The position numbers and the translations under genes are program-made. From the NCBI RefSeq assembly GCF_001194135.2, contig NC_068999.1, forward strand, positions 2,514,935 through 2,578,934: 64,000 nucleotides of DNA, in the 5' to 3' direction. Of this stretch, positions 11,989 through 55,400 are shown piece after piece. Each line of letters begins with the position of its first letter. The stretch's first letter is position 1. This DNA is from Octopus bimaculoides (Eukaryota). The notes under the pieces were generated by a model. The model saw only the letters and a program-made list of their open reading frames with translations, was not told where the DNA came from and searched no databases.

Positions 11989-13284
11989 ATCTAGCTTAAT
12001 ATATTTATGCAATAATATATATAAATGTGTTCTTTTGTTTTTTTGTTTTTTGAGGAGGAAATCTGAAATACTTTCTAACATTTTCCATGTTACTTTATAC
12101 CAAACACTCCCTCCTAAGTCTAGGAGTGTTCCTTAGACTGCATTGCTTTATATTCACAATGGATTATGTTAAGGTTGGTATATAACAGACATAATGGAAT
12201 TCTACACTTAACAAAGTTAATATTTCATTATGTGTGTGTGTGTTAAAGTGCTCAATGCATGTTTGTGAAGGAAGTGGACAGATTCTGATGTATAACCCTC
12301 TATATACGTGTTTTAATCCATAAGTGGTTTCGTATAAGTATCTAAACAGATAAAGCTGACAAAGAAATGTCTATTTTTTCCAAAGTTATATAAATAGACC
12401 CCTGCATCTCCAGTTGACTATCAAAAAAACGGGATCTTATAATGCAAATTCATAGGATAGAATTTTCTAATTAAGATGCTTAATTAACTTTTATTTAAGC
12501 AAACTTCAATTGGAAGAATTTTAGATCATTCCAAAAGCAATTTCTCCATTAGTTGCAGGGGTGGTTGTGTGGTAAGAAGCTTACTTCCCAATCACATGGT
12601 TCCAGGTTCAGTCCTACTGTGTGGCACCTTGATCAAGTATCTTCTACTATAGACTTGGACTGATCAAAGGTGGATTTGGTAGATGGAAACTGGAAGAAGC
12701 CTGTCATATGTGTGTCTGTGTTTGTTCCCTATCATCACTTGACAATCAGTGTTGGTTCATTTATGTCCCTGTGACTTAGTGGTTTGGCAAAAAGAGACCA
12801 ATAGAATAAGTGCCAGGCTTAAAAAAGAAAAAAATAAGTGCTGGGGTCAATTCATTCAACTAAAAGTCCTTCGAGGTGGTGCTCCAACATGGCCACAGTC
12901 TAATGACTGAAACAGATAAAGAAATTAAACTTATAAATCTGAGTTAGTGGAATAAAATGTTGAACTTAAACAAAGAATTTTTGTCCATAGAAATTTGTAT
13001 TTATCTCATGATACTTGCCAGTTTTAGTTTTATCATCCAATAATCCCAAATCCTTGATTCACTTAAGTATTTCCATAGTTGCCATTTAATTCCAATTTGA
13101 TTAGAAAAATTTGGAAACTACTATCTCTGCAACAGAACACTAAATCACAATATTTTTTTTTACCAAATGAAACTTCAAAGTATTGAAAAAATTCTTTATT
13201 TTAATGAATGAGAAGTTATTAAAAATGACTCACTTTATTATTGCATTATTGGTACATTATTGTTTCAGCAGGTCACTGATATAT

Positions 13285-22630: not shown

Positions 22631-24974
22631 AAGAACTTTATCACATTCTTATATCTGTTGCTATGCTGTTTGGCGGTTTTCCAGTCTGGCTACCATAAAC
22701 ATGTCACCTGAAAACACGTTAACTATATACTAATATAGTGGTAGGTCTGTTGATAGTGTAGAAAAAGGTTGTCAGTCAGTAGAGAGTGAAAGAGTGAGGA
22801 ATGCACGGTGCTGACTAGAAAGGATAGAGGTGGCATCGGCTTTCTTGCGGCCGAAAGGCAAGTGCTGGTCTTGATCAAAAGCGGGTGCTGCCCTTTGGTC
22901 TGGCTGACACAAAAGAGCAGCACTTCCCTTTTCGACTGCAAGAAAGATGATGCCACCTTTATTCTTATTCTTTTGCCGAATCACTAAGTTACGGGGACAT
23001 AAACACACCAGCATCAGTTGTCAGGCGATGGCAGGGGGACAAATGCAGACACACATAAATATATACACATATATGTGTGTGTTTATGTCTCTGTAACTTA
23101 GTGGTTCAGCAAAAGAGACTGATAAAATAAGTACTAGGCTTACAAAGAATAAGTCCTGGGGTCGATCTCTTCATCTAAAACCCTTCAAGGCAGTGTTCCA
23201 GCATCACTGCAGTCAAATGACTGAAGCAAAAAAAAAAAAATGACTGAAAGAATAACCATGTGATGTCCCGCTTCCAGGCTGGCGAAAGCTGGATGGTTTC
23301 ACAGGCTCTGGTGACTTACAGTACTGCATCGCACTCCAGTCTCTGCCTTTGTATGGTTTCTACAGCTGGGTGCCTTTCCTTCTGCCAACCACTTTATAGT
23401 GTACTTGATGTTTTTTTTCTGTGACACTAATAAAGTGATTGCTTCATAACTTGCAAGGCTGAGGGCCTAAAGTAGCCCCTGTAACTGAGAGAAGATACAA
23501 GAGAGTGTGGGCTATCATTCAAGGTAGAGGAATGGTTAGTAAGAAGGGAGGATGGAGAGGTATGGCGCAGAAGATGAAAGGGGAGGGATTAGTGACAGAG
23601 ATTATAGAAGAGAAAAAAAAAAGAGAAAGACTGAGCTGAATGGTGATATGTTGGGTTGTGTGAGGAGGGTATCTAGAGCAATCCAATATTAGAAGAGGGT
23701 GAGTAAGAGAACAGATGGGGAAAAGGAAAAGAGAAAGGAAGAAAGCAATAGCCAAGAGTAGAGAGAGATGCTGTGAGAGTCATTGAAGGAAAACAGGGTG
23801 TGGGGGATTCATGGGGATACATCAGAGGGGGAAAGCTGAAGAAAAAGATGAGGCTGTTGAGGGGGAAGAGAAGCGGAGAGTGAGAGAAAAGGAGGCACAA
23901 GATGAGGAGCAAGAAGATGTTGAAGAGTGCTATGGATGTAGGAGGAAGAGGAAGAGCAGAATCTCAATGCTGCAAATGCATTCTAAATGGGGAGGCAGTG
24001 GAGAGGATGGAAAAAGAGAGAGAGAGAGACTCAAACAGACAGAGTGTGACAGAGAGAAACAGCAGATGAGTGAGTGAAGGAAATGATAGAAGGCATCCAA
24101 GAGGTGTAAGAGCTGGTAGTAAGATTAAGATAAGAGGAGGTAATTGAGTGACAGTAGAGGTAACCTGAGAGAGAGTGTGAGTGATGAAGAGATGGGAGAC
24201 CTGGGTGAGGGGAGATGTAAGGTTCGGGTTAGGGATAAGAAATGGAAGAACAAGAAGTCTGTGCTTTTTGATTGAGAGATAAACAAAAGTCTGTGTGAAG
24301 TTCCAAATACAAAATATTTATTAATCATAATCAAAACAATGTGTTGTTATGGTGAATGACAGAAAAGAAAATATTTAAGACAAGTAAATCAATTTGTGTG
24401 TGTCAGCAGCCATGAGTGGACTAAATTCGTTCTGTGGTTGTTGTCAAGTGCCATAAATTTCTGTAGTGTCATAAATTTCTTGGCTGCTTTATGGTCACTG
24501 GCAAATTAGCAGATAAACAAACTATGCATAGTTAATGTCTTTCAATGAAAAGGAACCAAAGACAAAATTATTAATGACATTTCAGTATGTCGTTTGTCCA
24601 AAATTATGGTAGTATACAACATATGGATTCAAAGGGTAAAACATCTGTTGGATTTATTGTATTTTGTTGGTCACCTCAGTTATTGATTAAAAACATGTTC
24701 TTGAGGGTTCTACCTGAGATTTGAGTGATCACCTTTTTTCTGATGTTATCAATCTATGACAGAATTCTGTTATTTATCGGTTTTTTTTTTTTTTCTGAAC
24801 AGTGATTCAGGTTTGATTTCTAGTCAGTGAGTTGGTGTTTAGGACTCTATCAAACATTCCTGCTGTATGCATGTATATACGTCGGTGTGTGTGTCACAGC
24901 TTTTTAATTGCTCCCCTTGTGTTAGGATGTGTTTTTCTTTTTCTTGGGTGGACAAGTCTTCTGTAACATCATGT

Positions 24975-29697: not shown

Positions 29698-34875
<5,178 letters not shown>

Positions 34876-36174: not shown

Positions 36175-36741
36175 TTAAACCTTTTGTGTTCCTATTCTGG
36201 GCAAGTGCCTTCTACTATAGCCTTGAGTCGACCAAAGCCCTGTGAGTGGGATTTGGTAGACGGAAACTGAAAGTACTAGGCTTACAAAGAATAAGTTTTG
36301 GGATCGATTTGCTCGACTAAAGGCGGTGCTCCAGCATGGCCGCAGTCAAAATGACTGAAACAAAGAATAAACGAATATATATTATATATTTAATATATTT
36401 TTATATTATACATTTAGATAAAGATAGATCTGACCGGTTTATGGAGTTACCCTGGGTTTCACGTCTATAAAGCACTTAGCTTTACAGCATTTCTTCAGAT
36501 CCTAGGCTTATGGCCTCTCCATCTTTTACCTTTTACTTGTTTCAATCACTGAACTGCAACAATGCTAGGCCACCATCTTCAAGGGTTTAGTCAAACAAAC
36601 CACTCCCCTCCCTGGTACTTATTCTATCAATCTCTCTTTTGCCAAACCTCATATTTATGAGGACATAAACCAACAGTTGTCAAGTCATGGTGGAGGGGAG
36701 GACAAACACAAAGGTATATATACATAGATACACACACACAG

Positions 36742-37083: not shown

Positions 37084-39639
37084 GAGGGTATAAAAGAGGT
37101 ACAGGGAATAGGAGAGATGTGTAGGCAGAGAAGAGGCAATATAGGGTGTACATTACTCCATTATTTTAACAAATATTTCACCAAGCTGGCAGAGAAATTT
37201 GGGTCTTCTGCAGCTCTGTATATCAGCAGCAGACAAAGTGTGTGTATGTGTCTATGTACTTGTGTGAATATGTCTCTCTCTCTCTCCATCCCCCCTCTCT
37301 ATTTTATGTATATATGTGTGTGTAAATATATAATGGAGAAGTATATATATATCACATAAAGTTTGGCTGTGTGGTAAGAAGCTTGCTTCTGAACCATGTG
37401 GTTCTGGGTTCAGTCCCACTGCATGGCACCTTGGGCAGGGGTATTTTCTACTATAGTTTTGGGCCAACCAAAGCTTTGTGAGTGGATTTGGCAGCCCTTC
37501 AATATTTCCCTCACTTTAATGGAAACACGATGTAAACCACAGTCTACGGACATATCTCCTGAGAGTGACTTTATTTACTTACCACAGGATGGATTATAAC
37601 AACACCTTAAAATGAAGTTCTTACCTTTCCTTACCACGTCTATTACATTATATCATTTTTATTTTTTATTTTTACCTATTTTACTCTATCTTATCTTATT
37701 TCACCCTACTCTATTATTCTGAGTGCAAAGGTTTATTTTTGGCTAAATACAGCTCTTGCAGCACCCTACCAAGAATATAGCATCAATAGTGTTTCTTCCT
37801 GGCACAAAATCAAACTGCATCTCATCTGGGCTAATTCATTTTTTAATTATTTGACCTATGACCCTGTTTCCTTCTTACTTCATAATCTCCCTCGTTTTGG
37901 TTGTGTCTTGTGACCATTTGGTTGGGAAGCAGGCTTTTTAACCACACAGCCATGCATGTTCCTATTCTGTCAATCAAGTTGGCATAGAATTCCAGAAACT
38001 GTCATTAAAACCATTTCCAGTTTATATTAATCTCATTTGTGGATATAAAGAATTGAAAACATTTATGTTACACTTTGATTTGTTTTGATTTTTGTTTGGC
38101 ACTATCTTTTGTTTTTTACTTGTTTTAGTCATTGAATTGTGGCCATGCTGAAGCACTGTATTGAAGGGTTTTAGTTGAGTGAATTGAACCCCAGTACTTA
38201 CTCTTTTAAAGCCTGATACTTCTTCTATTGGTTTCTTTTGCTAAACCACTAAGTTACGGGGGACATAAACAACCAACACCTGGTTGTCAAGCAGAAGTGG
38301 AGGACAAAGGCACACACACACACACACACACACGAGAGGAACAAAAGTCATGCACTGTTGAAGTGGTCAGCTGCCCAACAGATGTGAATGTGCGATCAAA
38401 AGTTCAAGTAAAAGAGAACATTTATGGCAAATAAATGTGGAACTTACAGCTCTTGTATCCTGACTATAAATTCTCATTTGTACCTGTCATCTCAGGTGTA
38501 TTAGGTTATATTCCAACAAATTTACACAAAAACCTTGAAGTGCTAGTTTTTTTCAGAGAAAGAACAAAAGAAACTGACATAGATTCTTGTATTCCAATCT
38601 ATTAATGGCAAATGGAAGATTTGTAAGACATTCCAAAGATTCTCCATCTGAGATTCTTTTGGTGAATAGAGGCACACACTTGGATGTATGCATCGACAGC
38701 TCAACCAACACACCAACTCAGCCACATATCAGGAATTCTCTTAACTCTTCAAGTCTTGTCACTTTGTTAGCATCCGGCTTGAACTTTTTAAAGAACTTGA
38801 ATAAAACTCAAGAAAAAAAAGTACATACATGACAGGCTTCCCCTCTACTAAAACAGCTTACAAGGCTTTGGTCAGCCTGAGAATATAGCAGAAGACATTT
38901 GCCCAAGGTGCTACACCATGAGATTGAACCCAGGGCCATGTGGTTGGGAAGCAAACTTCCCACTACATGCTCACTCTTGTGCCTATATACATATTGAGGA
39001 ATTAAAAAAACAAAAAAAACTAATAACAACTGGAGAGGTTCCAACAAAAGTATAATTCTATTAGCAAGAATTCATGTCAGACATTGTATTTTGAGCTAAT
39101 CCTTTAACACTAAATGCAGTTGATATATTAACTTAAATCTTTTTATTCTCTAAACGATTATATTTTCCTGTGGCAATAAATGTGCAATGCTGGATATTTA
39201 TTCTTTGACTTATTTCAGGCTTTGAATTGGAGCAGTGCTGATGTACCACCTTGAAGGGTGCAGTAAATGAAATTAGCTCCTGTGCATATTGCCAGTCTCT
39301 CTCTTTTTTTTTTCTTTTGAACTCAGTAGTATTTGTGCCATTACTTTGGTAAAGTGAAGGCTGAATTTTAGAGATGAGGTTAGAATAAGGTCAAAACTTT
39401 GTCAGAGTTGTCACCCTTAGAAGCTGGAAAAAAGGAAAATACAATTAGCTGTGGATCGATATCGATTTTAATTTTGTTTCATCTCACAACATATATATTC
39501 CTAGTTAGCTTTTTAATGCTCTTTGCATTAAATACGTAAATAAGAACATATCTATGACTTCAAGAGTTAACAACATGACAAACTGCAAGTCTAATTCTAT
39601 AACAATAGCGTAGATAGTCTGCGGAAGTTTAATTGTCTA

Positions 39640-40264: not shown

Positions 40265-43200
40265 NNNNNNNNNNNNNNNNNNNNNNNNNNNNNNNNNNNN
40301 NNNNNNNNNNNNNNNNNNNNNNNNNNNNNNNNNNNNNNNNNNNNNNNNNNNNNNNNNNNNNNNNNNNNNNNNNNNNNNNNNNNNNNNNNNNNNNNNNNNN
40401 NNNNNNNNNNNNNNNNNNNNNNNNNNNNNNNNNNNNNNNNNNNNNNNNNNNNNNNNNNNNNNNNNNNNNNNNTTTTAATGATTCGAGATTTTATTTAGAT
40501 ATCTCAAGTTTATTTAGAAACGTGGTCAAGTTGTCGAATTTGTACGTAAATAACTACCTCCAGTACAAAACGGTCGGGACCACGTAAAAACGATTTGTCA
40601 CATTCTAATAAATCACCATTTTTCACAATTGAATATTAAGATTAATTGAACTGAGTTAATTCCCAACATAAGACATATTTTTTTTAGACATAAAGTAATG
40701 CACTTCAGAATTTTTATAGTCATTCGGTGACTCCACACGTTTTATATAATACTTTATGCGCTAATAAGGAACCTGTGATTACTAATTACACCGAATTAAT
40801 TATTGTTTAATAGTATATTTTATTAACAACGTAGCACCACACTTTGCAGGCATTGAGTAACTGCAGCATGTCATTCTTATATGGTCCTGTTCGTTTTATG
40901 CTGGAGGTCGTCGTTAATCAACTGACACATGTCTAGTAAAATTCCTATTAGTTGATTACACGGTCAGTGCCATATGTTACTTGCAGCCAATAGTATTCTC
41001 GTAAGTTTAAACCTTTTAAGTTAGCAATGTGTAGAATTGGTAAATGGGTTGTAAAACTAAGATATAATTTATATCTAACCCGCGTTAGATATTTGGCCGT
41101 GCATGGAACATGATTGACCAGTAACTTTCAGATTGGAATCACAGTGTTTGATGTTCACAAATACTTGCTCTCATTTTCGTAACTTAAATCAATGCCTTAA
41201 AACAATTCTGAGTTTAGAAAGATAACATAAATGAAATTTCATTTTACAGTGCGTGGATCAGATGGTGTTTGGGTTCTTCAAGGTTCCCCTAACAAAACCA
41301 AAGAAGTGTTTCGAGGGTAAGTTTTAATTTGACCTTTTTTTATTTAACAGTTGTCGCATATATTAACATTTATAGTGTTCAAGCATGTTTGTGTTTTAAA
41401 TATTTTATAAGGACACACACATATCTGAAATTAAGGTACTGCCCTACTGAAGATATGATTGGAAGTTAAGATCTTGTTGTGGCAATAATACAGGGTGGGG
41501 CATAAAGATCTTCCACATTGTGAATGAATGTAAAAAGAAAACACAACCATCCAAGAAAAAATTTATTATCTTTCTGAAATATCCGCCTTCCATGCTGGTA
41601 TGGGTAGGACGGTTTGACAGGAGATTTCTGTGACTGTTTTGGCAGGATTTTTACAGCTGGATGCCCTTCCTAACACTCATCACCCAGCAGAGTGGACTTG
41701 ATGAACTGAAAATAAATGAAACTTACTGTTTTCAGTGGAATGGTTACATACAGGAAGGGAAACCAAGCAGAAAAACAGATTTCTACCTCATTTTATAAGC
41801 ATTGAGTGTAAAACTTATGCTTAGCATTATAAATTTGTAAAATAGATTTAAATCAAAATGAAATACAAATTCAACTTGAAGAAGTTTTGAGAGTGCACAT
41901 ATCAACACCAGTTTGTTACTATGTAGATTTACTCTTTTATGTTTTTGATTCCAGTGCTGAAAATTTGGATAAGATTTTTCCCTCTATGAATGCATTCTAT
42001 TTTTATTCAGGGATTGCAAAACAGAATGTCGTGCCATGGCTTTCTCTATGAATGGGCAATATTTTGCCTGGAGTGATGAAGATGGGTAAGAATTTAACCA
42101 TTAATTGGCTTTGGATAAATTTATTACTGTCAAATCTTATGTAACTATTTTGCAATTTAAGATAGATTTCAATATTTTATTGTACCTGTTTAGGGACTAA
42201 GAATAAAGAAGCAATTTCTTCTTTTCATTCTAACCTGATGATAACGTGAACTTGTTTCAGTATATTCTTCACTACAAATCCTGTAAATTATTCCTTGTCT
42301 TCACCTCTCATTTTTGCTAACCGTGTGACTGCAGTTAATGGAAGTGGCTGTCTCACTTACTCCAGCTCCCTCTCTCCTCTCTCACACTCCCTTTCTTTCA
42401 CCCCCTCCCCAATAACCTAAAGTGTAATGTGCGAACGAACGACCAAGCAGAATTATAATATAGATTTGTTTTAATTTCAGTATCAAAGTTATGAAAACCA
42501 GCAACTATGAAAAAGTGATGGCAATTGAGAAGTCCAGAATATCTGGACTTGCATTTTCCCCTCTTGGGACATACCTCATATCTGCTGATATCTCAAGTAA
42601 GCATACATTGGTTTGTGTGTCTATATCCACCCGTGTACATACATTTGCAAATGATAATTTAAAGTATCTTGTTTGATATGGATTCCTTTTAACAGCTAGT
42701 TTTTTGACTTTATTAATTGCAGGTCAAAAGAAAGATGTTCCTAACCTGTGTATTTGGGAAACAGCCACAGGTAAATTGTTGAAAGGATTCTTCCATAAAA
42801 GGATGTCTGATTGGTAAGTTTGAATTGCATTAATACTCATCTTCATCAGCATCATCACCATCGTCTAATGTCTGTTTTCCATGCTGGCATGGGTTGGATG
42901 GTTTGACAGGAGCTGGCCAGCCAGTGGGGCTATCCAGACTCCAGTTGTCTGTTTTGGCATGGTTTCTATGGCTGGATGCCTTTCCTAACATGAACCACAT
43001 TACAGAGTGTGCTGGGTGCTTTTTGCATGCCACCGGTATGGATGTGTTTACACAACACCAGCACAAGTGCATTTCACATGGTACTGGCATGAGTGTGCTT
43101 TACACGATACTGGCATCAGTGCATTTTATAAGGTACCAGCACCTGCAAAGGACATGCCTGTTAATGAGATTTTAGAGACATGCCTAGATTGTTAATGAGA

Positions 43201-46200
43201 TTTTAGCAATTAATTATTATTTCTCTTATCTGTTAATGCTGGATATTTTTAAATAACCATTTTCTTTTTAGCTTGGGAGAGAACCATTTTGTTATATGCT
43301 AGACATAAACATTTGCAAAAGTACTAGTTTTTGATAAAAGACTCAATCTATGAATTTATGTTAATAAAAAAAAATCTACCTGGCAAAGCTTTGTTTTTTT
43401 GAAAGACAATTTACTGGAAACTTCATTGTATTTTTTAATCCTCGTGTTTTCTTTTCAAGGAAGCCCAGTTGGACTCCTGATGATAAACTGATGGTCCGTC
43501 TACACAACAACGATGTTGAGTTTTATGAAAATGGAGATTTTGGTATGTTGCCGTAATGTTATATTTTAGAATTGAAATTTATGAAATAAAGAAAGACATT
43601 TATTCAGTGTTTATCAACAAGTATATTTGATTATTTTTACAATCTGATCAATTGCAATACCTCAAATGAAATGTTGAGAAAAATTTAAATTTCAACACAC
43701 TTTATATATTTTATTTAAAATATTCTCCAGATTATAGTGATATTAAAAAAAAAAAAAAATTAATAATGTAATGAGCATAGCTTTACTTTGTTTATTTCTC
43801 TCACTACTATGAATTTATTTAGTAGCATTCTGCTGGCTAGAAGCCTTTCTCTACACCATTCTAACACAAGATTCATTATGAAGAAATGATGTTGATTACA
43901 CTTATGCATATCTTTTGAATGAAACAATAATTTGACATTTTGATTTTTATTCTAGATAATCCAAAGACACGTCTTCATGCTGCAAAAATTTCTGAATATG
44001 CTTTTTCTAAGAGCGACCATGTTGCCATCTATATTCCTGGGAGTAAAGTGAGATTTTATCTTTATGCCATGTTTGCTATTTTAGGACCATTATATTTGAA
44101 ATAGTTCTTTTTATTTTACATCCATGTGTGAAATCTAACATTGTTTGGTCTGTTTGAATAACAGCTTGTAAGATAGTTGAACAGCAGTTAGACAAAACTG
44201 ATGTGAAAAGTACAGTTATGTTGGAGGGACAGTCAGACAAGTGTTAAATTGGAGGGTCAGATAGATTTGCAGTTGAGATAAATATTACTGGTATTAAACA
44301 ACTGGTTAAGCTGTCAGCCTACAAGTTTGACTACTTAAAGAAACAATGTTTTTGAGTCTATCGTTGATGCTGGACTGTTCTGATCTGATAAACAAAATAA
44401 TTTTCATTATTGGCTCTGTCCAATTAATTCTTTAATAGGTACTTTAACTAGAATTACGAGAATTTGCATTGCTGGATTTAAATCTTGTCAGAGATGAAAC
44501 CTGTAATTGAACGTTGGGATTATACAAGAAAACTGTGGTCAGTGCTGTCTCGTGCAGCATGACGCCTTCCAGTAATGCTGGTAGTAATTAAAAACAAAAA
44601 ACAAAACAAAAAAACTCATTGATTATATTTGTTTTTTAAGCAAAATGTATTTTCTAAATTGTTTAAGATGTAAATTGTAATAAGATTTGTAAAATGGTTC
44701 ATTCAACCATCTTTAAATTTGGATGTAGTTGTTAGTTGGAGAATTTCTTCTAAGATTTCATCAAATCTTTATATAATCTTCTTTGATTTTCAGGGTCAGC
44801 CATCAAATATTCGAATCTTCAAACATCCCAACTTCAATGGATGTCCCTTGGCAAATAAGAGCTTTTTCAAAGCTGACAAAATTACAATGTATTGGAATAA
44901 AGCTGGTGAGTGTAGATGTCTGTATGTGTGGAGTATATATAAATAAACTGTTTGAAATATTGTATTTTCACCATTTAATTCCTTTATATTTTTGTACAGC
45001 TTAGATGATGGAGGAATTGTAAGCCTAGTACTTACTCTATCAGTCGCTTTTGCTGAACCGCTAAGTTATGGGGACGTAAGCACACCAGCATCAGTTGTCA
45101 AGCAGGCGGGGGGGGGGGGGGACAAACACACACACACACACACACACATAAATATATATATATATACGACAGGCTTCTTTCAGTTTCCATCTACCAAATC
45201 CACTCATAGGCATTGGTCGGCCCAAGGCTATAGTAGAAGACACTTACCTAAGGTGCCACGCAGTAGGACTGAACCCAGGACCATGTGGTTGGTCTTCAGG
45301 TCTTCTCCAGCACAGAATCTTTATGATCACATGCCATCTTTTTCATGAGATCAGTCTTCACATGTCATTTTTTTTTGTGCATAGATTCATTCCTCTTTGT
45401 TTTTCTTTCCCTATTGGTCATCCTGCATTTTAATACCTCACATATCCTTTACTCTCTCTGTTCACTGGTGGTCCATTGTTTATGCACACAAACATTAATG
45501 TATACAGCAGAGCATGTTTGCCTCTGTTTTTTTTCCAACCTGTTGCACACATTCTCTGCATTCAATACCTGTTTCACTACTGTGCAACATTGCACTTCAT
45601 ACACAACCTTGCCCCAGCACAATTTGGCCCTCCATAACAAAACGCAAGAAGCTGTGCTGGAAACGCTTCATCCAATCCGAGTTAAAAATCTTGATTCTTC
45701 ACATGAATTCTGGTTTTATTCTTGATTCTAATTTTATTATTTTCAAGTGGTCATCTTTTTTTCTTCAGTTTTATTTTGTTTTTATTGCTTATACTTTACT
45801 CATCCATATTACTTTTTCTCTCTTTCTTGCCACTATTTTCTTAAATCTATTTTGAAGAGCTAAAAGTAATTTTAGAACCATTAATCCATATTTTCTCTGT
45901 TTTACCCTCCTTCTTCTCAGGTACCGGTTTGCTTGTGATTACATCAACAGAAACTTCAGACAAGTCATATTATGGAGAAACTGGCCTTCATTACCTTAGT
46001 ATAAAAGGTGAAGGTTGCCTTGTACCAAGAGGTAAATATTTTCATAACACACATGTTAATGCTCGCTTTGATTTAATACTTTGTCCTGCACGACTTCCTC
46101 TTGGATTTATTGAGGAATGAGACATTCAGTAAAGTGGTTGGTGATAGGAGGGGCATCCAACCATAGAAACTTGTCCAAAAATGGAACTCATATGCAAGGC

Positions 46201-48489
46201 ATGGAATCCATTAGCAGTGTCATAAGTTATCTGTCTAGCTGGGGTAGGAGCTCTAAATTAAGGACGGATACAGAGTGGAGATGAATCTACAGTCTGTGTC
46301 ACATTGAACACTTTATCCTTCCAATCCATTATGGAAAAATGGATGTAAAAATGAGGAGGATGGGAGTAACTTTCATGAATTAACCGTAAAACCTTGATAT
46401 TTTTAGTGGTATTTATACACATTTAAAGTAAATGAATGACTTTACTTTCAGCTAAAGATGGTCCTGTCTACTGTGTGGAGTGGCATCCCAATTCTACCCA
46501 ATTCTGCGTGGTTTATGGTTGTATCCTTTCATTTACTTCTATTTTCAATTGCCATTAAATAAACTTTATCAAATTATTTTCCGTTCTTTTGTACGGATTG
46601 TGTATGACCTCTACCTAAATCTACTTGTATCCCTTCTCATCTCTTTAATGTTTATCCCCCATGTTCCCACTCAAGGCTTTGTCTAATACTTTTTCTTCAA
46701 ACCAATAATCCTTTTGGAACATTCTCCTTTATGATTTTCTCTCAAACACCTGACCGTCAAAAGCTCAAATTGATATTAATCCTAATAACTATTTCCATCT
46801 TCTTCAGGTGGGCATGCAAAATCAATGGAAGATTTCTCTTTAGACTAAATTATAGATTAAAAATGCACATTGATATAGTTTTTCTTTTGCTGTAGGACAC
46901 TATTTGGTATGGTTGAAATTTTGAAGATGTTTAATAATCTTTTCTCCTCTAGGCACAAGGCCTGAAATTTTTTTTGGGCGGGGCAGTCGATTAGATCAAC
47001 CTCAGTACATAACTGGTACTTGATTTATCAACCTCGACAGGATTTAAGGCAAAGTCGACCTCAGCAGAATTTGAACTCAGAACGTAAAGACAGACGAAAT
47101 ACCGCTGAGCATTTCGCCTGGTGTGCCAGCTCACCACCAATGTTATTGTCTTGGCCATCATAAAAATAACGGAGCTGCTTTACCATATTTGGAATTACAG
47201 ATTTAAACAAAAATGTATTTTTAAATATAAAAAAATAAATTGTAACGTCATGCAACAGATGCACATGAATTTCTCTGTCGTCCAGTGTCATTCATGTGCA
47301 ATCTTCCATGACAGGCCAGAAGAAATACCCCCAGTTTGAAATTCCACTTTATTCAGATATTGCTTACTGGATAAGCTACAACTGTAGGTGTACAAGACTG
47401 AAATGTCTTGTCTTTATCACGATATCAGGACAGTTTGTCCCTATCTCCCTATTTGTATGTTTTCAAATATCTCAGAGAATCACGTCTTCATTCTTTTCAA
47501 CTATTTCTGGGATATACTTGTTCAATATTTCAACTTAGAAAAGGTTCATTTCCTTAACTATTTTTCTCTGCTACTAAGTAGCTGTCTCCTCTGTCGTGTA
47601 TCATGACATGGTCACTATGAAGTATCCAAACAGAACGAGGCTAATGTCCTCATCAACTTTACTGCCATACTTTAAAACATTCAGATTTGATATTTCACTT
47701 CAGTGTTTTTCTTGTAAAAACTGGTTGCTAGATACTTCACCTGGTTTAGCAATTATCGGGTCTTTATTTTCTCATTTTTGTTGAGTTCTTTGGAACTAGA
47801 TGTAGCTCTGTCACATATTAGAGTTGAAGATTGTTCATGGAGAGGTTTTCTTTTTTTTTTTTTACTTGATTGTATTTTTGTTTGTTATAGTTTCTTGAAG
47901 TTTTTTTTACATTCTAGTATTTTTTTTTTTTAAAGAATATGTAGTTAGATTGCCTTTTTCTGTATTTTGTTTCTGTTTTGAATGCAATATTTTTTGTCAT
48001 GTTTTGCCTGTCATAATTTTGTTTCTATTTTATCTAAGTTTTTCTCTTAATCCCAGCTACACCGCTGTGTTTTTAAATAAGTTATTTGATGATAAAAATC
48101 TTTGTATGCACTTCTATTTAAATGTTTTGCTGTGATCAAAAGTTATTCCTTAACCACATATTCCAGTTATGCCAGCCAAAGCTACACTCTATAACTTGAA
48201 ATGTGATCCTGTATTTGATTATGGAACTGCTCCACGGAATTCAGCCTTTTATAACCCACAGGGAAACAATATCCTTTTGCGCTATACTTCACCTTTGTGG
48301 AAAATGTCTTTCCTTAGAGATATGTGATGATAATTAGAGCCCTGTCAATTAGAGAGGTAGGACTTATTCTTTGTAAGCCTAGTACTTGTTCTATCGGTCT
48401 CTTTTGCCGAACTGCAAAGTTACAGGGACGTAAATACAGCAGCATCGGTTGTCAAGCGATGGTGGGAGGACAAACACGGATACACAAAC

Positions 48490-48531
<42 letters not shown>

Positions 48532-51500
48532 NNNNNNNNNNNNNNNNNNNNNNNNNNNNNNNNNNNNNNNNNNNNNNNNNNNNNNNNNNNNNNNNNNNNN
48601 NNNNNNNNNNNNNNNNNNNNNNNNNNNNNNNNNNNNNNNNNNNNNNNNNNNNNNNNNNNNNNNNNNNNNNNNNNNNNNNNNNNNNNNNNNNNNNNNNNNN
48701 NNNNNNNNNNNNNNNNNNNNNNNNNNNNNNNNNNNNNNNNNNNNNNNNNNNNNNNNNNNNNNNNNNNNNNNNNNNNNNNNNNNNNNNNNNNNNNNNNNNN
48801 NNNNNNNNNNNNNNNNNNNNNNNNNNNNNNNNNNNNNNNNNNNNNNNNNNNNNNNNNNNNNNNNNNNNNNNNNNNNNNNNNNNNNNNNNNNNNNNNNNNN
48901 NNNNNNNNNNNNNNNNNNNNNNNNNNNNNNNNNNNNNNNNNNNNNNNNNNNNNNNNNNNNNNNNNNNNNNNNNNNNNNNNNNNNNNNNNNNNNNNNNNNN
49001 NNNNNNNNNNNNNNNNNNNNNNNNNNNNNNNNNNNNNNNNNNNNNNNNNNNNNNNNNNNNNNNNNNNNNNNNNNNNNNNNNNNNNNNNNNNNNNNNNNNN
49101 NNNNNNNNNNNNNNNNNNNNNNNNNNNNNNNNNNNNNNNNNNNNNNNNNNNNNNNNNNNNNNNNNNNNNNNNNNNNNNNNNNNNNNNNNNNNNNNNNNNN
49201 NNNNNNNNNNNNNNNNNNNNNNNNNNNNNNNNNNNNNNNNNNNNNNNNNNNNNNNNNNNNNNNNNNNNNNNNNNNNNNNNNNNNNNNNNNNNNNNNNNNN
49301 NNNNNNNNNNNNNNNNNNNNNTATATATATATATGCATATGATAGGTTTCTGTGTACAAAATCCACTCACAAGGCTTTGGTCATCCTGAGGCTATAGCAG
49401 AAGACACTTGCTCAAGGTGCCATGCAGTGGGACTGAACCTGGAACTATGTGGTTGGGAAGCAAGCTTCTTACCACACAGCCACGCCTATACCAAAATGAT
49501 TTTTATCTTAATTACATAGACTCTAGATTACTTCCAAAACCGATGGAGTTACAAGCTTTGCCTAATTATAATTATATTCAGTATGGATAGTCCATTTCAC
49601 TATTCCTATAAAATCAATAGATATTTGATAATTTTATTTTTAATTTAATTAGTAAATTTTATTGTTGAAGTTTTAGATAATTTCTGAAAATTCATCATCA
49701 TCATCATCATTTAATGTCCGTTTTCCATGCTGGCATGGGTTGGACAGTTTGACTGGGGACTGGCAAGCCAGGAGGTGGCACCAGGTTCCGATCTGGTCTG
49801 GCAATGTTTCTACAGCAGGATGCCCTTCATAACGCCAACCACCCAGAGAGTGTAGTGGGTGCTTTTTACGTGCCATCGACACGAGGGCCAGTTAGGTGGG
49901 CCTGGCATCGATCACGTTCGGATGGTGCTTTTTACATGCCACTAGCACAGGGGCCAGTCAGTGAGTACTGGCATCGACCACGTTCGGATGGTGCTTTTTA
50001 CGTGCTACCGGCACAAGAGCCAGTCAGGGTACTGGCATTGGCCATGTTCGGTTGGTGCTTTTTACATGCCATCAGCACGAGAGTCAGTCAGGGGGTATAC
50101 TGGCATCGACCACATTTGGATGGGACTTTTTATGTGCCACCAACACGAGAGCATCAACATTATTTTTCCTTTACTGTTAACTTTTGTGTTTGGCTGGATT
50201 TGGTAATTTGCAAGGTGATTTGGAATTCTGGGATCTTCAGCAACAAAAAGTGATCAGTTCTACTAAAGCAATGGATACAACACATTTTGCTTGGTGTCCT
50301 GATGGTGTTCACTTTATTACAGCTACCATGGCTCCTCGACTCCGTGTTGGTAATGGGTAAGTACTTTATTATTATTATTATTATTATTTTGTATTTGCAT
50401 TGGCAAGATGCTCCTTCAATTTGCTTGAAAGTTCATCCCAATTAGGTTATTAAAATTCTTCATCTAAAAAAAAACAATGGCAGCAAAAGTGAAAGGATGG
50501 ATGATGACGGTGACTACAATTCTTACCTACACCACCAAAAGTAAAGGGACAGCTACAGCAACATGGCAAATAAAGAGAACAAGCAAACCTTGTCGACGAC
50601 CATCTCCTGCACACACCTTTACATCATTTCAGCCACAACAGAAATAGCACCACCAAAACCCAGCTGTCTCACTACCAGGGATGTCACTTTGACCAATATG
50701 CCTGTTGTTGGTTATGATATCTTTATTAAAGCAATGACTGCTACGCCTAAACTGCCGAAACTGTGTCTTTTGCTAATTCAGGCAAAGATATGCGGAAAAT
50801 TTGATAAGGTAACTAAGGGAGGATGAAGAGGAAACTCTTGCCATACCAGAACATATTAACAAACCAGGAGGTGCATAGTAACCTACTCTTACATAGGACA
50901 AAAGAAAAAGTAGATGGGTGGAAAGACCAAATCTAGCTGAAATAGAATTCTGTTCTGACAGAAAGAACTCTAAAAATTCGAAGAATTAATCCTGATATTC
51001 TCATATCTTGGCTGATGTGTGGCAAACATATTGGTTGATAGCAGCTGGCTGGCATTGAAGAGGAGACCCAGGTATTAGACGTTTGTAAGTTTTGCAATGA
51101 GAACTAAAGGAATAAAGGAATGGTGCTCTTGATCCAAACAGAGCAGGATATAACTGAAGCCATCCCTGACCTAATTCACTTGTTAGATAAAACCCATTTG
51201 TTTGTGCTGATAGAAGACTGAAGGCCAAGGTGTCACATGTGTGGGTTTTTTTTTGTCCACAGCAGAGGAGGCCAAACGAAAGGTCCCCACTGCTGTTAAT
51301 ATCACAACTTGAATAATATGAATGATAGCAGGCGACTACAATGACAATAATTATTTCAATAGTAAAATCAGTAGCAGCTGTGAAAGTAAGGGCAGCCGTA
51401 ACAGCAGTGCCAACCGAAATGCAGAACAGAACCCTAATGACAACAAAATGCTCCGTCTCTACAAAATAGCATAAAACGTTTGGGTCACCATTTAGATTAT

Positions 51501-52365
51501 TCAGGTTTGTCCTGCAACGAGGACCATAAAGATGGAAATTAGAAAACGGTCCCTTGTAAGAAGGGAGAAAGAAACGGGAAAGGGACACAACAAATCTACA
51601 CTCACAAAAAGCTGAGAGATTGAGAGGGAGGAAATTGATGTGATTCCTAATAATTAATGGAAACTCTTCTGCTTGACCTCCTTTTACAACAGCAGAAAAA
51701 ATATTTATCCAATTAATGAAAAAAAAAAAATGAAGTTTAGAAAATGACTAATTTTTGATATTTTTTTAATTTAATTTCCTTTCAGGTATAAACTGTGGCA
51801 TTATACTGGAAGTATTTTGGCTCAGTTGGAAATACCGTCTGGAAAAGAATTATGGGAGTCATTATGGATGCCAGATATGGATGGCAAATTCCCTTCGAAA
51901 TCTATTGTGTATAAGAAGGTACCATCNNNNNNNNNNNNNNNNNNNNNNNNNNNNNNNNNNNNNNNNNNNNNNNNNNNNNNNNNNNNNNNNNNNNNNNNNN
52001 NNNNNNNNNNNNNNNNNNNNNNNNNNNNNNNNNNNNNNNNNNNNNNNNNNNNNNNNNNNNNNNNNNNNNNNNNNNNNNNNNNNNNNNNNNNNNNNNNNNN
52101 NNNNNNNNNNNNNNNNNNNNNNNNNNNNNNNNNNNNNNNNNNNNNNNNNNNNNNNNNNNNNNNNNNNNNNNNNNNNNNNNNNNNNNNNNNNNNNNNNNNN
52201 NNNNNNNNNNNNNNNNNNNNNNNNNNNNNNNNNNNNNNNNNNNNNNNNNNNNNNNNNNNNNNNNNNNNNNNNNNNNNTATCGATCTCTTTTGTCAAACTG
52301 CTAATTTACAGGGACATAAACACACCAACACCAGTTGTCAAGCGATGGTGGGAGGACAAACACAA

Positions 52366-52416
<51 letters not shown>

Positions 52417-55400
52417 CACGATGGGCTTCTTTCAGTTTCCGTCTACCAAATCTACTCGTAAGGCTTAGGTCGGTCCAAGGCTATATAGTAGAATGCCCAA
52501 AGTGCCATGCAGTGGGACTGAACCTGGAACCATGTGGTTGGTAAGCAAGCTACTTACCATACAGCCACATCTGCAGACTCCTTCACATCAACCCTACCAT
52601 CATAGAAAAGAACACGTTGGGTAAAGTGGCCTTGGGTTCCATACACAACTTGGTGAAAAGAGGGATTGTTTATAACTGAAATTCCTTTCATCTGAAGTCT
52701 ACTCAGTCAGCCTAAACACCCATCACCAACTTAGATGATATCTTGTATTTTATTTCTCATATTTCTTTTTTTAGGTCGAATGGGTTCATCTAGATTGTAT
52801 GTTTCTTGTAGGGCATCTTTTGAAGCCTTTCTCGTCCAATATTTTATGAGGTTCATTAAGACTTGATAGGGTTTTATATTTTTTACTATTGTAGGACTTG
52901 AATTCTTTTGCTAGTTTGACAGAAAAAAGTATTCTGCTCAAGGATTCTGTTTAGCTATTCACACATTCAACTTGGCTGCTTTCCCATTCGTTGGAAAGTC
53001 TCTGGCTATTATTGTGTTACTCTAAGAAACAATTATATACTTTAATAATTGAAACTAAAATTTCTTTAACATGTTATAAATTTGAAATTTATTTTAAATA
53101 TATTTGCAGTGAAACCTGTTGCTGCCTATCGCCCTCCACACGCTCGCGGTCAGCCTGCTTCAGATTTTAAGTTACATGAATTCGAACCTCCTTCCAATAA
53201 AAAAATTCCAGGTCTTAGTGAGTAATGTGTTTTTTCTTAATATTCTCATTTGTTTGAACAAAATGTTGGAAGATGAAAGTTTCTAACTCAGATTTGAAAT
53301 AAATTACTAGGAATAAACTTACCAGTGTAGTTTGCTGAATCAAATTCTTCTACAGCTATTGGCTGTGACATATAGCCAATGGATAAGATATGCTAAGCCA
53401 TTGTCTTGTTGTGCTGTTGCTGTCAACTTGGCTACAAATATCTGTACCTTGATAGCTGACATGTCTTAAGAAAAGCTGTCTAAATGTTATAATCTCTTGT
53501 GTAATTGTAAGCTGTGAAATTTTAAGGCATTTTGCTTTAAGTTTTAAGGCACTGTTTTGCAAATCTACTTTACATCAGTTTGAAATATTTGGATAATGAT
53601 CTGTATTATGTTTCTGTACTTTGAAATTTAAAGACTCAAGTTATGCAAAGACAAAATTATCATTTTAGTAACTTATTTTTTTTGTTTCTAAGATATTTTC
53701 ATGAGTGAAATATGCAGGAGTCGTGATCGTAACCTACTCAACCAACACTAGTATGGAGAGCAGATGCAGAACGACAGTCATGGCTCTCTATCAACTCAGA
53801 GATAACAATTTTCAGAAAAAATATATAATTTTGAAGTGTAATGGTAATTTAAACTATATTTGGCATAAATGAAATTTTTGAAATCTTCTCTACAGATTCT
53901 GGAGACACAGGAAAAAAAGGTAATAAGAAGGCTAAAGGTCAGAAACAGGTAAATTATTTCTCTAAACACTCCATATTTTAATATAATGATTTCTGATATT
54001 GGAAAAAGGAATATATAATTATGCAGTTTCTAATTATGGCAACTCATTATGGTTTTGAAATGAAGAATGATATTGTTTAAAATTCTAGACAGCTCTGAGT
54101 TGAGATCCAGTTTATCATGATTTTTTTTTTTTTCACATATTCTCCAGTTGTCTGGAAGTAGTAAATTCTAATTTATGCAAATTAACCACTAAGTAATTGC
54201 CTGTAACAAAACTGAAAGTCAAAAAATGGTGATAAACAACAGTAATATTTTCATTTCTTTTTTCTTTAGATTCAACAAGCTAACATCCCTGGATTAGCAC
54301 CAATCACTGTTGAAAAGAAAACAAATTCTGAATCTGCCGATTTTGACAAAGATAAAAAAATAAGGAATTTAAAGAAGGTAATTACAAAACTTAATTTTTA
54401 TTTTCTAATTTTATTTTCCTCTGGAATCTTTGAAATTGGTTGGGGTGGGTGATGTATTTCATTGTGATCCTTTAAGATTAACGCTAGAACTGTAGAAAAC
54501 CATTTATGCAAAGTAAAATATTCAATCATTGGGTTGTAGAGATATGTCTGGCCATATGCACAAGTTGTAGAGTGGAGTGGTGACTTTCTTTGCATGCTTT
54601 AACATAGTGTGGAATTGGAAGCAATGCAGAATATGAGTTGCAGAGCCTTGGTTCTAGGGTAGTGGGTAGATTTCTACAAGGTTAGTATTGATCTTGACAA
54701 ATAAACCAGAACACCCAGTTGCTATTTGGTTAGTAAGAGAGAGAGATAGTAAGACCATGCAATACATCTCAGCAGACTTTACTTTCCTATTGAATGTTCC
54801 ATTTGAATATTTCACTTGTATGTGGGTAACAACTGCAAGTGAACCATTTTTGGAGGGACACAAGTGGCTCATCCCATCCTCCTAGCTGTCTTGGATTACT
54901 CTGGGGAGGCACATTTGCTGGTAAGGTTACTTACTGTAAAATCGTCAGAACTGCAACTTGGAGGAAGACTTGAAATGTCTGAATGTGTGGGTTGCATTGA
55001 ATGGGCAACATGCAATACTGTTGACATGGGTTAACTTCTTATTTTGGAAACCTTGTTATATTTTAATTCTTTTTTCTTTTTGTAGAAAATTACTCAGATA
55101 AACAAGCTGAAAGAGCAACAGAAAACTGGCAAAAAACTCGATGAAACTCAGGTAAAAATGATTTCATTGTTTAGAATTGGTATTGAAATGACCTGGAGAA
55201 TCACTACCCTCCCGCTGGTTTTTTTCCCTCTAGCAGTTGGCAGATCAGACAATATTTTTGGTTTTCTGTTACATTTTCTATTTCATTCCTTTGGAGACAG
55301 TGTAAGGAGATGCTTACGGGAAGCTGAGAGTCTTTCAGTTATGAATGTAGACACCATTACACAAACTCCATTTTAATAAGGCTATTTCAGTGTACATGTT

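Follow-up and report, generated by a model that had tools for sequence, protein, structure and literature searches.

A 102-nt exon of EIF2A between two U12-type introns, GT-AG and AT-AC

A 102-nt exon of the gene for EIF2A, hereafter exon B, is very probably bounded by an old pair of U12-type introns, GT-AG upstream and AT-AC downstream, which have been retained and are removed by the minor spliceosome at the junctions 46520^48167 and 48268^50182 of the window (the whole stretch of 64,000 nucleotides analyzed here). The same pair recurs in 14 or more further invertebrate-like sequences and thus represents a genuine, old, conserved and fairly ordinary feature of gene structure. As established knowledge of U12 introns would predict, the minor spliceosome (U11/U12-U4atac/U6atac) should excise both introns, and should do so constitutively. 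The two introns are most probably ancient elements that this lineage has retained as neighbors rather than a local peculiarity, and other lineages have lost one or both of them or possess a U2-type intron in the same or a nearby position.

Exons and protein product of the EIF2A gene

The + strand of the window carries an animal EIF2A gene, probably that of a mollusc, the located exons of which extend from approximately 42.0 to 55.2 kb. The exon map is partial, with the first exon and the exons past 53204 only partly placed. The exons considered here are the following:

44794-44905 and 45921-46031, + strand: two upstream EIF2A exons (within 44794-46031), with ordinary U2 GT-AG introns
46452-46520, + strand: exon A, 69 nt, encoding KDGPVYCVEWHPNSTQFCVVYG, preceded by ctttactttcag and with the 3' end ...GTT TAT GGT T in phase 1
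48167-48268, + strand: exon B, 102 nt, phase 1 to phase 1, with the product (F)MPAKATLYNLKCDPVFDYGTAPRNSAFYNPQGN(I)
50182-50356, + strand: exon C, 175 nt, with the product (I)LCLAGFGNLQGDLEFWDL...PRLRVGNG, followed by the U2-type donor GTAAGT
51786-51926, + strand: next EIF2A exon, its 3' end truncated by the gap 51927-52277

The two upstream exons have the donors GTGAGT and GTAAAT together with pyrimidine-rich acceptors, and the remaining EIF2A introns examined in the window are also of the ordinary U2 GT-AG kind. When spliced, exons A, B and C give the open frame ...FCVVYGF|MPAKAT...YNPQGN|ILCLAGFGNL..., the product of which is a clear orthologue of human eIF2A. The spliced model of 236 amino acids matches Pfam PF08662 (eIF2A) at 1.1e-70, with 237.9 bits against a cut-off of 20.5, and aligns with residues 211-450 of human eIF2A (PDB 8DYS) at E = 9e-101, gapless at both junctions. 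The match to 3WJ9 reaches 1e-53 and that to eIF3b is far weaker (approximately 1e-11), while six contiguous homologues align to the model through both junctions. A collection of 5.8 billion proteins yielded no spliced protein from the same species. Upstream of 44794, frame breaks point to at least two further EIF2A exons beyond those located.

U12 signals, splice junctions and alternative readings

Assignment of both introns to the U12 type is based upon consensus matching and conservation. Their elements are distributed as follows:

46521-48166, + strand: intron 1, U12-type GT-AG, 1646 nt, the junction of which yields VVYG F MPAKAT
46521-46529, + strand: U12 5' splice site of intron 1, GTATCCTTT, a perfect match to RTATCCTTT
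48146-48154, + strand: U12 branch site of intron 1, TTCCTTAAC, a perfect match to TTCCTTRAY, with 12 nt to the intron end, CAG
48269-50181, + strand: intron 2, U12-type AT-AC, nominally 1913 nt including a gap of estimated length
48269-48277, + strand: U12 5' splice site of intron 2, ATATCCTTT, a perfect match to the consensus
50166-50174, + strand: U12 branch site of intron 2, TTCCTTTAC, departing from TTCCTTRAY at one base, T in place of R
50180-50181, + strand: 3' terminal AC of intron 2, which ends in AAC

Intron 1 shows RTATCCTT at +1 and a TCCTTRAY motif whose distance to the 3' splice site falls in the range of about 8-20 nt; the branch A, at 48153, precedes the final base of the intron by 13 nt, with CACATATTCCAG in between. 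Intron 2 combines RTATCCTT at +1 with AT-AC ends and a near-consensus branch site by its 3' end, which has the form TTCCTTTAC-7 nt-AC. With its branch A at position 50173, intron 2 leaves a distance of only 8 nt to its final base, which is short in comparison with the usual spacing of U12 introns. Neither intron contains a polypyrimidine tract. Given the base composition of the window, the per-position chance is p = 1.75e-5 for RTATCCTTT and p = 2.7e-5 for TTCCTTRAY, and the chance of encountering the motifs of both introns at exon edges defined by homology is of the order of 1e-16, calculated with the 5' motif exactly at the exon end and the branch motif at most about 13 positions away from the matching exon start, twice. 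The window-wide count of RTATCCTTT (5 observed vs 1.6 expected) is not significant by itself. Other occurrences were rejected as extra U12 introns: RTATCCTTT at 45442 sits within a U2 intron, the copies at 61779 and 62961 lie in AT-rich DNA past the gene with no exon there, and RTATCCTT at 20657 and 26674 is upstream of the located exons. Rfam returned no match and no snRNA gene in the 64-kb window.

Enumeration of all GT-AG, GC-AG and AT-AC combinations within approximately 50-140 nt of both junctions left only 46520^48167 and 48268^50182 as restoring VVYGFMPAKAT and NPQGNILCLAGFGNL, the intron 2 junction being the sole one that restores NPQGN-ILCLAGFGNL. The initial annotation had proposed precisely this pair, a GT-AG and then an AT-AC intron of the U12 type around a 102-nt EIF2A exon at 48167-48268; its coordinates and motifs are right to the base, and the proposal is sustained by motifs, frame, exclusion of alternatives and conservation. 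Its further statement that both introns are needed to obtain FMPAKAT and ILxLAGFGNL agrees with the spliced frame and with the enumeration of alternative sites. Close to each junction there are stop-free GT-AG or GC-AG combinations that keep the frame, for instance 46518/48166, which gives VVYVMPAKAT, and 48297/50257, so that the major spliceosome might be imagined to cut the region at such canonical sites, with the U12-like motifs being coincidental. However, the canonical options at junction 2 all delete the invariant ILCLAGFGNLQ, some of them adding unrelated residues, and those at junction 1 replace the conserved GF; moreover, acceptors upstream of 50180 are blocked by the in-frame TAA at 50178-50180, just 5' of exon C, and at least 14 further sequences retain the U12 motifs in the same positions. 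We regard this as the least probable of all the readings considered. Somewhat less remote, yet still very unlikely, is the possibility that the junctions are right and only intron 2 is truly minor, with intron 1 a substrate of the major spliceosome or of either machinery. Its GT-AG ends fit both spliceosomes, U2-type introns occur exactly at site 1 (the position of intron 1) in the orthologous loci L036 and L048, and some introns with U12-like motifs are reported to be spliced by both machineries (PMC10853781). Against this, GTT|GTATCCTTT is a poor target for U1 and a poor U2 5' splice site (GTT|GTATCC, with C at +5 and C at +6), a perfect TTCCTTAAC stands 13 nt from the 3' end in place of a polypyrimidine tract, and the conservation of a GTATC[CT]TT donor with a branch motif 12-16 nt before AG is unexpected for a U2 intron.

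The structure of intron 2 includes unread sequence and repeats:

48371-48489, + strand: 5' half of a SINE-like repeat, corresponding to positions 1-125 (45017-45141) of an intact copy at 45017-45292
48532-49321, no strand: assembly gap (N) of 790 unread bases, of estimated length and wholly within intron 2
49346-49456, + strand: 3' half of the SINE-like repeat, corresponding to positions 167-276 (45183-45292) of the intact copy
49858-50152, + strand: 66-nt tandem repeat, 4.5 copies, TRF score 321

These 790 bases of estimated length, together with the presence of eight gaps in the window, one of which (51927-52277) does cut an exon, raise the question of an assembly artefact, in which the join across 48532-49321 would be wrong, or the gap would hide a coding exon, and intron 2 as drawn would be unreal. 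The gap begins 263 nt past the 5' splice site and ends 860 nt before the 3' splice site, and the two halves of a single repeat flank it in the right order and the same orientation, with (TG)n(TA)n running from the end of the 5' half into the gap; the absent part corresponds to the (CA)n(TA)n core of the SINE-like element. The 5' splice site with exon B, as well as the branch site and 3' splice site with exon C, are on sequenced DNA. On the two sides of the gap the exons come in the order of the protein, with no residue missing at the junction in comparison with human eIF2A and six other homologues, and therefore the reading frame is set by the exons and not by the gap. Furthermore, fully read orthologous introns at this position (391 nt in L001, 97 nt in L003, and those of L051, L052, L062 and others) contain no exon. 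An artefact is thus highly improbable, ranking between the two previous alternatives, although the unread stretch 48532-49321 could in principle hide an alternative exon.

Distribution of the pair among orthologous loci

Related loci were searched with a trimmed alignment and compared with the window by tblastx with filtering; terms such as vertebrate-like or fungus-like are readings of sequence similarity alone. Besides the window, 14 distinct exon-B sequences from public assemblies carry both U12 introns around the 102-nt exon, GT-AG upstream and AT-AC or AT-AA downstream. Both introns are found in L051, L052, L057, L062-66, L070-72, L074, L075, L077-80 and L091, as well as in L001, a close relative in which intron 2 is complete (ATATCCTTTC...TTCCTTAAT-10 nt-AC). 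For each of the two introns, other species have a U12-type intron at the same site and phase. The loci L003, L005 and L083-L090 have an intron at site 2 (the position of intron 2) only, with the donor ATATCCTT, which is present at the identical position in all the loci with both introns, L001 included. L004 shows the reverse situation, lacking an intron at site 2 but having GTATCCTTGA...TTCCTTGAC-13 nt-CAG at site 1.

The U12 GT-AG donors at site 1 are GTATCCTTG in L004, L052 and L078, GTATCCTTT in L070, GTATCCTTC in L091, GTATCTTTT in L062, L064, L072 and L079, and GTATCCAAC in L051, with conserved GTATC[CT]TT and branch motifs such as TTCCTTGAC and TTCTTAAC located 12-16 nt before AG. Introns at site 2 terminate in AC or AA, downstream of a CTTAAC or CTTGAC motif; the AA ending, combined with the ATATCCTT donor and a CTTAAC branch site, is seen in L057, L062-66, L071, L072, L074, L075, L077 and L080. 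Several intron 2 orthologues therefore resemble the AT-AA U12 introns listed in Table 2 of PMC1557818, whereas intron 2 of the window is canonical AT-AC.

U2-type introns occupy exactly site 1 in L036 (GTATGA) and in the fungus-like L048 (GTACGT), indicating that this site has changed type in evolution. U2-type introns that coincide with a site of the pair or are displaced from it by a few bases are seen in L036, L048, L006, L008, L076 and L012. The last of these, vertebrate-like, has no intron at site 1, a U2 GT-AG intron 14 nt upstream of site 2 and only U2 GT-AG introns in the region. The spliced protein is a clear orthologue of human eIF2A (8DYS) and belongs to PF08662, whereas the gene structure differs from that of L012, and vertebrates appear to be devoid of either intron. 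EIF2A is not in the lists of human and mouse minor-intron genes (MIDB; supplements of PMC6717393), while the latter supplements include EIF3I, EIF3K and EIF4G3. The divergence among the sequences, rather than a species tree, suggests that the pair is old.

A different kind of evidence is provided by L011, an intron-less processed pseudogene of EIF2A, ridden with stops, from an L001-like species. It keeps the exact junction predicted for the AT-AC intron, GGAAACA|TTTTGTGT and ...CAAGGAAACA|TTTTGTGTCAGGCTGG. At the junction of intron 1 it has an insert of approximately 66 nt, and consequently does not confirm that junction.

Relation to known U12 introns, and a possible role in regulation and exon definition

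The EIF2A introns share with known U12-type introns the RTATCCTT 5' site, a TCCTTRAY-type branch near the 3' end without a polypyrimidine tract, GT-AG or AT-AC termini, strong positional conservation and U2-type neighbors in the gene; they differ only in the branch of intron 2, with its one non-consensus base and short distance of 8 nt. Genes with two or more U12 introns include the vertebrate SCN and CACNA1 channel genes and the SLC9A exchangers (PMC1557818, PMC2831892), and genes with two such introns are commoner than expected by chance, 45 having been observed in human against 6-16 expected (PMC1557818). EIF2A resembles these genes in having more than one U12 intron, but its introns are immediate neighbors that share a 102-nt exon and belong to different subtypes; the typical minor intron is depicted with U2-type introns on both sides (PMC8329584). 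Our literature searches found no paper describing adjacent or consecutive pairs of U12 introns, and only incidental co-mentions of EIF2A with U12 or minor introns. The view of the initial annotation that such pairs are rarer still than U12 introns, themselves rare, is plausible. The pair leaves current knowledge of U12 introns unchanged and is of modest interest.

The initial annotation had also suggested that two slowly spliced U12 introns could render eIF2A output rate-limited or stress-tunable. Splicing of U12 introns is thought, in the general literature, to be slower and possibly rate-limiting (PMC1557818, PMC8329584), and the pair has been retained in many lineages. However, many lineages, one of them vertebrate-like, have lost one or both introns with the protein visibly unchanged, and the gene is missing from the human and mouse lists mentioned above; a second U12 intron may leave the rate of processing unchanged (PMC1557818), and much of minor-intron evolution may be neutral (PMC10639083). 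Such a regulatory role would therefore seem doubtful.

We give a similarly low probability to the idea that the 102-nt exon could constitute a conserved 'minor-only' unit of exon definition, read on both sides by U11/U12 components. All 15 sequences have GT-AG upstream of the exon and AT-AC or AT-AA downstream of it, and this fixed order of subtypes means that skipping of exon B would pair a GT 5' end with an AC or AA 3' end. Among the U12 pairs reported as productive, GT-AG and AT-AC are the best and AT-AN and GT-AT are possible, GT-AC and GT-AA not being among them (PMC1557818). The order of subtypes may thus protect the in-frame exon B from being skipped. If true, the locus would offer a natural system for the correct pairing of two minor introns across a short exon.

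Considered as a compact and conserved locus, with two minor introns on one short exon and lineage-specific loss of either, this region of EIF2A is convenient for studies of U12 intron loss, conversion of U12 to U2 introns and exon definition between minor introns. It also bears upon genome annotation, and the expectation of the initial annotation that standard gene predictors will mis-model the region is plausible. The link between exons B and C is out of reach for a predictor limited to GT-AG and GC-AG introns, which would lose or garble some 90 conserved residues in the beta-propeller of eIF2A, and the series of orthologues shows the same problem in many invertebrate genomes.

Splice signals and junctions of the U12 intron pair

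Direct reading of positions 46200-50600 and in silico splicing of the three claimed exons reproduced exactly what the initial annotation had described, namely a 102-nt EIF2A exon flanked on both sides by U12 (minor-spliceosome) introns. The elements of this region, all on the forward strand, are as follows.

46452-46520, +, exon A, ending ...GTT TAT GGT T
46521, +, 5' end of intron 1 (46521-48166, GT-AG), starting GTATCCTTT
48146-48154, +, branch site of intron 1, TTCCTTAAC, with the CAG end 12 nt further on, at 48166
48167-48268, +, exon B, 102 nt
48269, +, 5' end of intron 2 (48269-50181, AT-AC), starting ATATCCTTT
50166-50174, +, branch site of intron 2, TTCCTTTAC; the intron terminates ...TGTTAAC at 50181
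50182-50356, +, exon C, followed by GTAAGT

The spliced A-B-C frame is free of stops, reading KDGPVYCVEWHPNSTQFCVVYG-F-MPAKATLYNLKCDPVFDYGTAPRNSAFYNPQGN-I-LCLAGFGNLQGDLEFWDL...PRLRVGNG, and both introns are in phase 1. Each shows every sequence-level feature of the U12 type, the sole blemish being in intron 2, whose branch site carries T in place of the consensus R, at a distance of 8 nt from the 3' end. The other EIF2A introns examined are of the major-spliceosome (U2) type, with donors GTAAGA, GTAAGT, GTATGT, GTGAGT, GTAAAT and GTAAGT and pyrimidine-rich acceptors.

An open model of 236 residues, built from six consecutive exons (44794-51926), matches Pfam PF08662 (eIF2A) at 1.1e-70 and human eIF2A (PDB 8DYS, residues 211-450) at 9e-101. 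The latter alignment is ungapped at junction 1 (FCVVYGF/MPAKAT vs FCAVYGFMPAKAT; the slash marks the splice) and at junction 2 (YNPQGN/ILCLAGFGNL vs YSPHGHILVLAGFGNL). When the 115-residue peptide of the three exons was searched against 5.8 billion proteins, 47 PF08662 fragments were returned, six of which read through both junctions without indels. Around each junction, to a distance of about 50-140 nt, we also enumerated every GT-AG, GC-AG and AT-AC pair that leaves the frame open. VVYGFMPAKAT is produced by 46521/48166 only, and all GT-AG or GC-AG options at junction 2 lose ILCLAGFGNLQ, some of them adding unrelated residues too; acceptors farther upstream are ruled out there by an in-frame TAA at 50178-50180. 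The alternative of canonical GT-AG sites that keep the frame thus fails at both junctions, and the U12 pair around exon B is confirmed as an observation, with the structural interpretation of the initial annotation supported.

Given the base composition of the window, RTATCCTTT has a probability of 1.75e-5 per position and TTCCTTRAY of 2.7e-5. The 5' motif lies at +1 of two exon ends fixed independently by protein homology, and a branch motif precedes both of the matching exon starts at the short distance allowed, with a joint chance probability of the order of 1e-16. Across the window RTATCCTTT occurs five times against 1.6 expected, a count that is not significant alone. The match at 45442 (+) was rejected as a U12 splice site, lying in an ordinary U2 intron (GTGAGT...TTCTCAG), as were those at 61779 and 62961 (+), which lie downstream of the gene, in AT-rich DNA without any visible exon. 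RTATCCTT is also present at 20657 and 26674 (+), upstream of the mapped EIF2A exons. All five of these consensus matches are taken as chance.

Two minor features of the introns can be added. Intron 1 contains a second perfect branch motif TTCCTTAAC (within 47550-47578) with an AG 21 nt past its branch A, a possible cryptic 3' splice site of the minor type; the three copies of this motif on the + strand of the window, against about 1.7 expected, are compatible with chance. Intron 2 carries a 66-nt tandem repeat (4.5 copies, 79% matches, 49858-50152) that stops 13 nt short of the branch site.

Conservation, loss and age of the two introns

Related EIF2A loci were collected from contigs encoding the homologous fragments and from a trimmed-alignment scan of JGI metagenome contigs, and the resulting 92 loci were parsed for the two intron positions, hereafter sites 1 and 2. 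U12 introns flank the exon on both sides, and its length is exactly 102 nt, in 14 distinct exon-B sequences other than that of the window (loci L001, L051, L052, L057, L062-66, L070, L071, L072/74, L075, L077, L078, L079, L080 and L091), which share 68-77% DNA identity with exon B of the octopus. Their upstream donor, where the contig extends that far, is GTATCCTTT, GTATCCTTG, GTATCCTTC, GTATCTTTT or GTATCCAAC, and the branch motif of the upstream intron (TTCCTTGAC, TTCCTTAAC, TTCTTAAC, TTCCTGAC or similar) is found 12-16 nt ahead of the AG. The downstream donor is invariably ATATCCTT, while intron 2, with CTTAAC or CTTGAC ahead of its 3' end, terminates in AC or, for one group (L057, L062-L066, L071, L072, L074, L075, L077 and L080; ...CTTAACATAGATAA/TT), AA. 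These last introns would seem to be of the AT-AA minor type, which several distinct sequences have conserved; U12 introns with AT-AA ends are on record for both human and mouse (PMC1557818, Table 2).

One further locus bears on the splicing of intron 2. L011, an EIF2A copy at 1000-2340 of a 26-kb genomic contig, is by its sequence a processed pseudogene from an L001-like species, since it is intron-less, bears stop codons and has about 88% DNA identity with the L001 exons. It reads ...CCACAAGGAAACA/TTTTGTGTCAGGCTGG, with exon B joined to exon C precisely at the predicted AT-AC junction, and the next three introns are likewise missing. It is uninformative on junction 1 because of an insert of ~66 nt there (about 1679-1745), which starts ATATTTG, contains GTCTTGAC and ends CAAG; this insert could be what is left of a U12 intron that was mis-spliced or retained in part, or else an insertion with no relation to it.

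Other loci retain intron 1 alone, as a U12 intron (L004), intron 2 alone, as AT-AC (L003, L005 and L083-L090), or neither (L009). Small U2-type introns occupy exactly site 1, in the same phase, in L036 (150-235, GTATGA) and in L048 (2440-2500, GTACGT), the latter fungus-like in sequence, which points to a very old site 1 whose intron type has switched in some lineages. Near site 2, U2 GT-AG introns are found 6 nt upstream in phase 1 (L006:790-1190, L008:298-908 and the 45-nt intron of L076) and, in the vertebrate-like L012, 14 nt upstream in phase 2, with site 1 free of introns; they may reflect replacement or sliding after loss of the U12 intron, or independent gains. The gain of U12 introns is generally rare, and it is on this rarity, together with sequence divergence, that the pair may be considered old.

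Relation to known minor introns and possible function

Human genes with two U12 introns are over-represented (45 vs 6-16 expected; PMC1557818), the usual examples being the SCN and CACNA1 channel genes (PMC2831892). A typical minor intron is drawn between U2-type introns (PMC8329584), whereas in EIF2A each member of the pair has a U12 neighbour. Our literature search found no paper discussing adjacent U12 pairs and none mentioning U12 introns in EIF2A, a gene not entered in the minor-intron gene lists of human and mouse, where EIF3I, EIF3K and EIF4G3 are present. Minor introns have been scored across >3000 genomes, with relative enrichment in molluscs (PMC10639083), and introns 1 and 2 are probably already in such survey tables wherever the gene was modelled correctly.

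The best-supported reading is that these would be two constitutive minor-spliceosome introns kept from an ancestor. The initial annotation had proposed that slow U12 splicing could make eIF2A expression rate-limiting or stress-tunable; this is the generic idea about genes with minor introns, with no specific support from this locus, and against it stands the loss of one or both introns in many lineages without visible change in the protein. A role in guarding exon B against skipping might be sought in the order of the subtypes, which is constant in 15 of 15 sequences (the window and 14 others), GT-AG always preceding AT-AC or AT-AA. If this in-frame 102-nt exon were skipped, a GT...AC or GT...AA pairing would be required, which is not among the pairings reported as productive in U12 splicing (PMC1557818), and we give a low probability to the constant order being meaningful in this respect. 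The pair is of use for annotation and offers a tidy evolutionary example.

Assembly gaps and the incomplete gene model

An assembly gap (48532-49321) lies entirely within intron 2, well away from either splice site. The left flank (48371-48489, then (TG)n(TA)n) matches positions 1-125 of a SINE-like element and its right flank ((TA)n, then 49346-49456) positions 167-276, in the same orientation. Since these flanks are the halves of a repeat that only a (CA)n(TA)n microsatellite parts in the intact copy at 45017-45292, the unread stretch would most simply be the microsatellite core of one repeat, the length of the gap being an estimate. The unread bases may conceal an alternative exon, but the fully read orthologous introns (L001, L003, L051, L052, L062 and others) are without any exon; the exons on either side follow in protein order with zero residues missing.

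The SINE-like element is ~276 nt long, with an internal (CA)n(TA)n, and is dispersed in at least 10 copies in both orientations in the window.

Partial copies: about 1579-1810, 12588-12709, 22970-23145, 32877-32984, 36200-36710, 37392-37494, 38209-38947, 48371-49456 and 52278-52541

The gaps appear tied to this repeat, at least two of them (48532 and 51927) adjoining copies. At the second gap (51927-52277; region 51786-52541) the following EIF2A exon loses its 3' end, its translation passing from ...SIVYKKVPS into N, and another SINE-like copy (52278-52541) lies immediately on the 3' side of the gap; judging from L001 and L011, the loss probably amounts to about 10-15 codons. Upstream, the reading frame is interrupted between two located exons, 42011-42085 and 42723-42813, and again between 43460-43542 and 44794-44905; at least two further EIF2A exons are in these intervals, and the first exon is also outside the located set.
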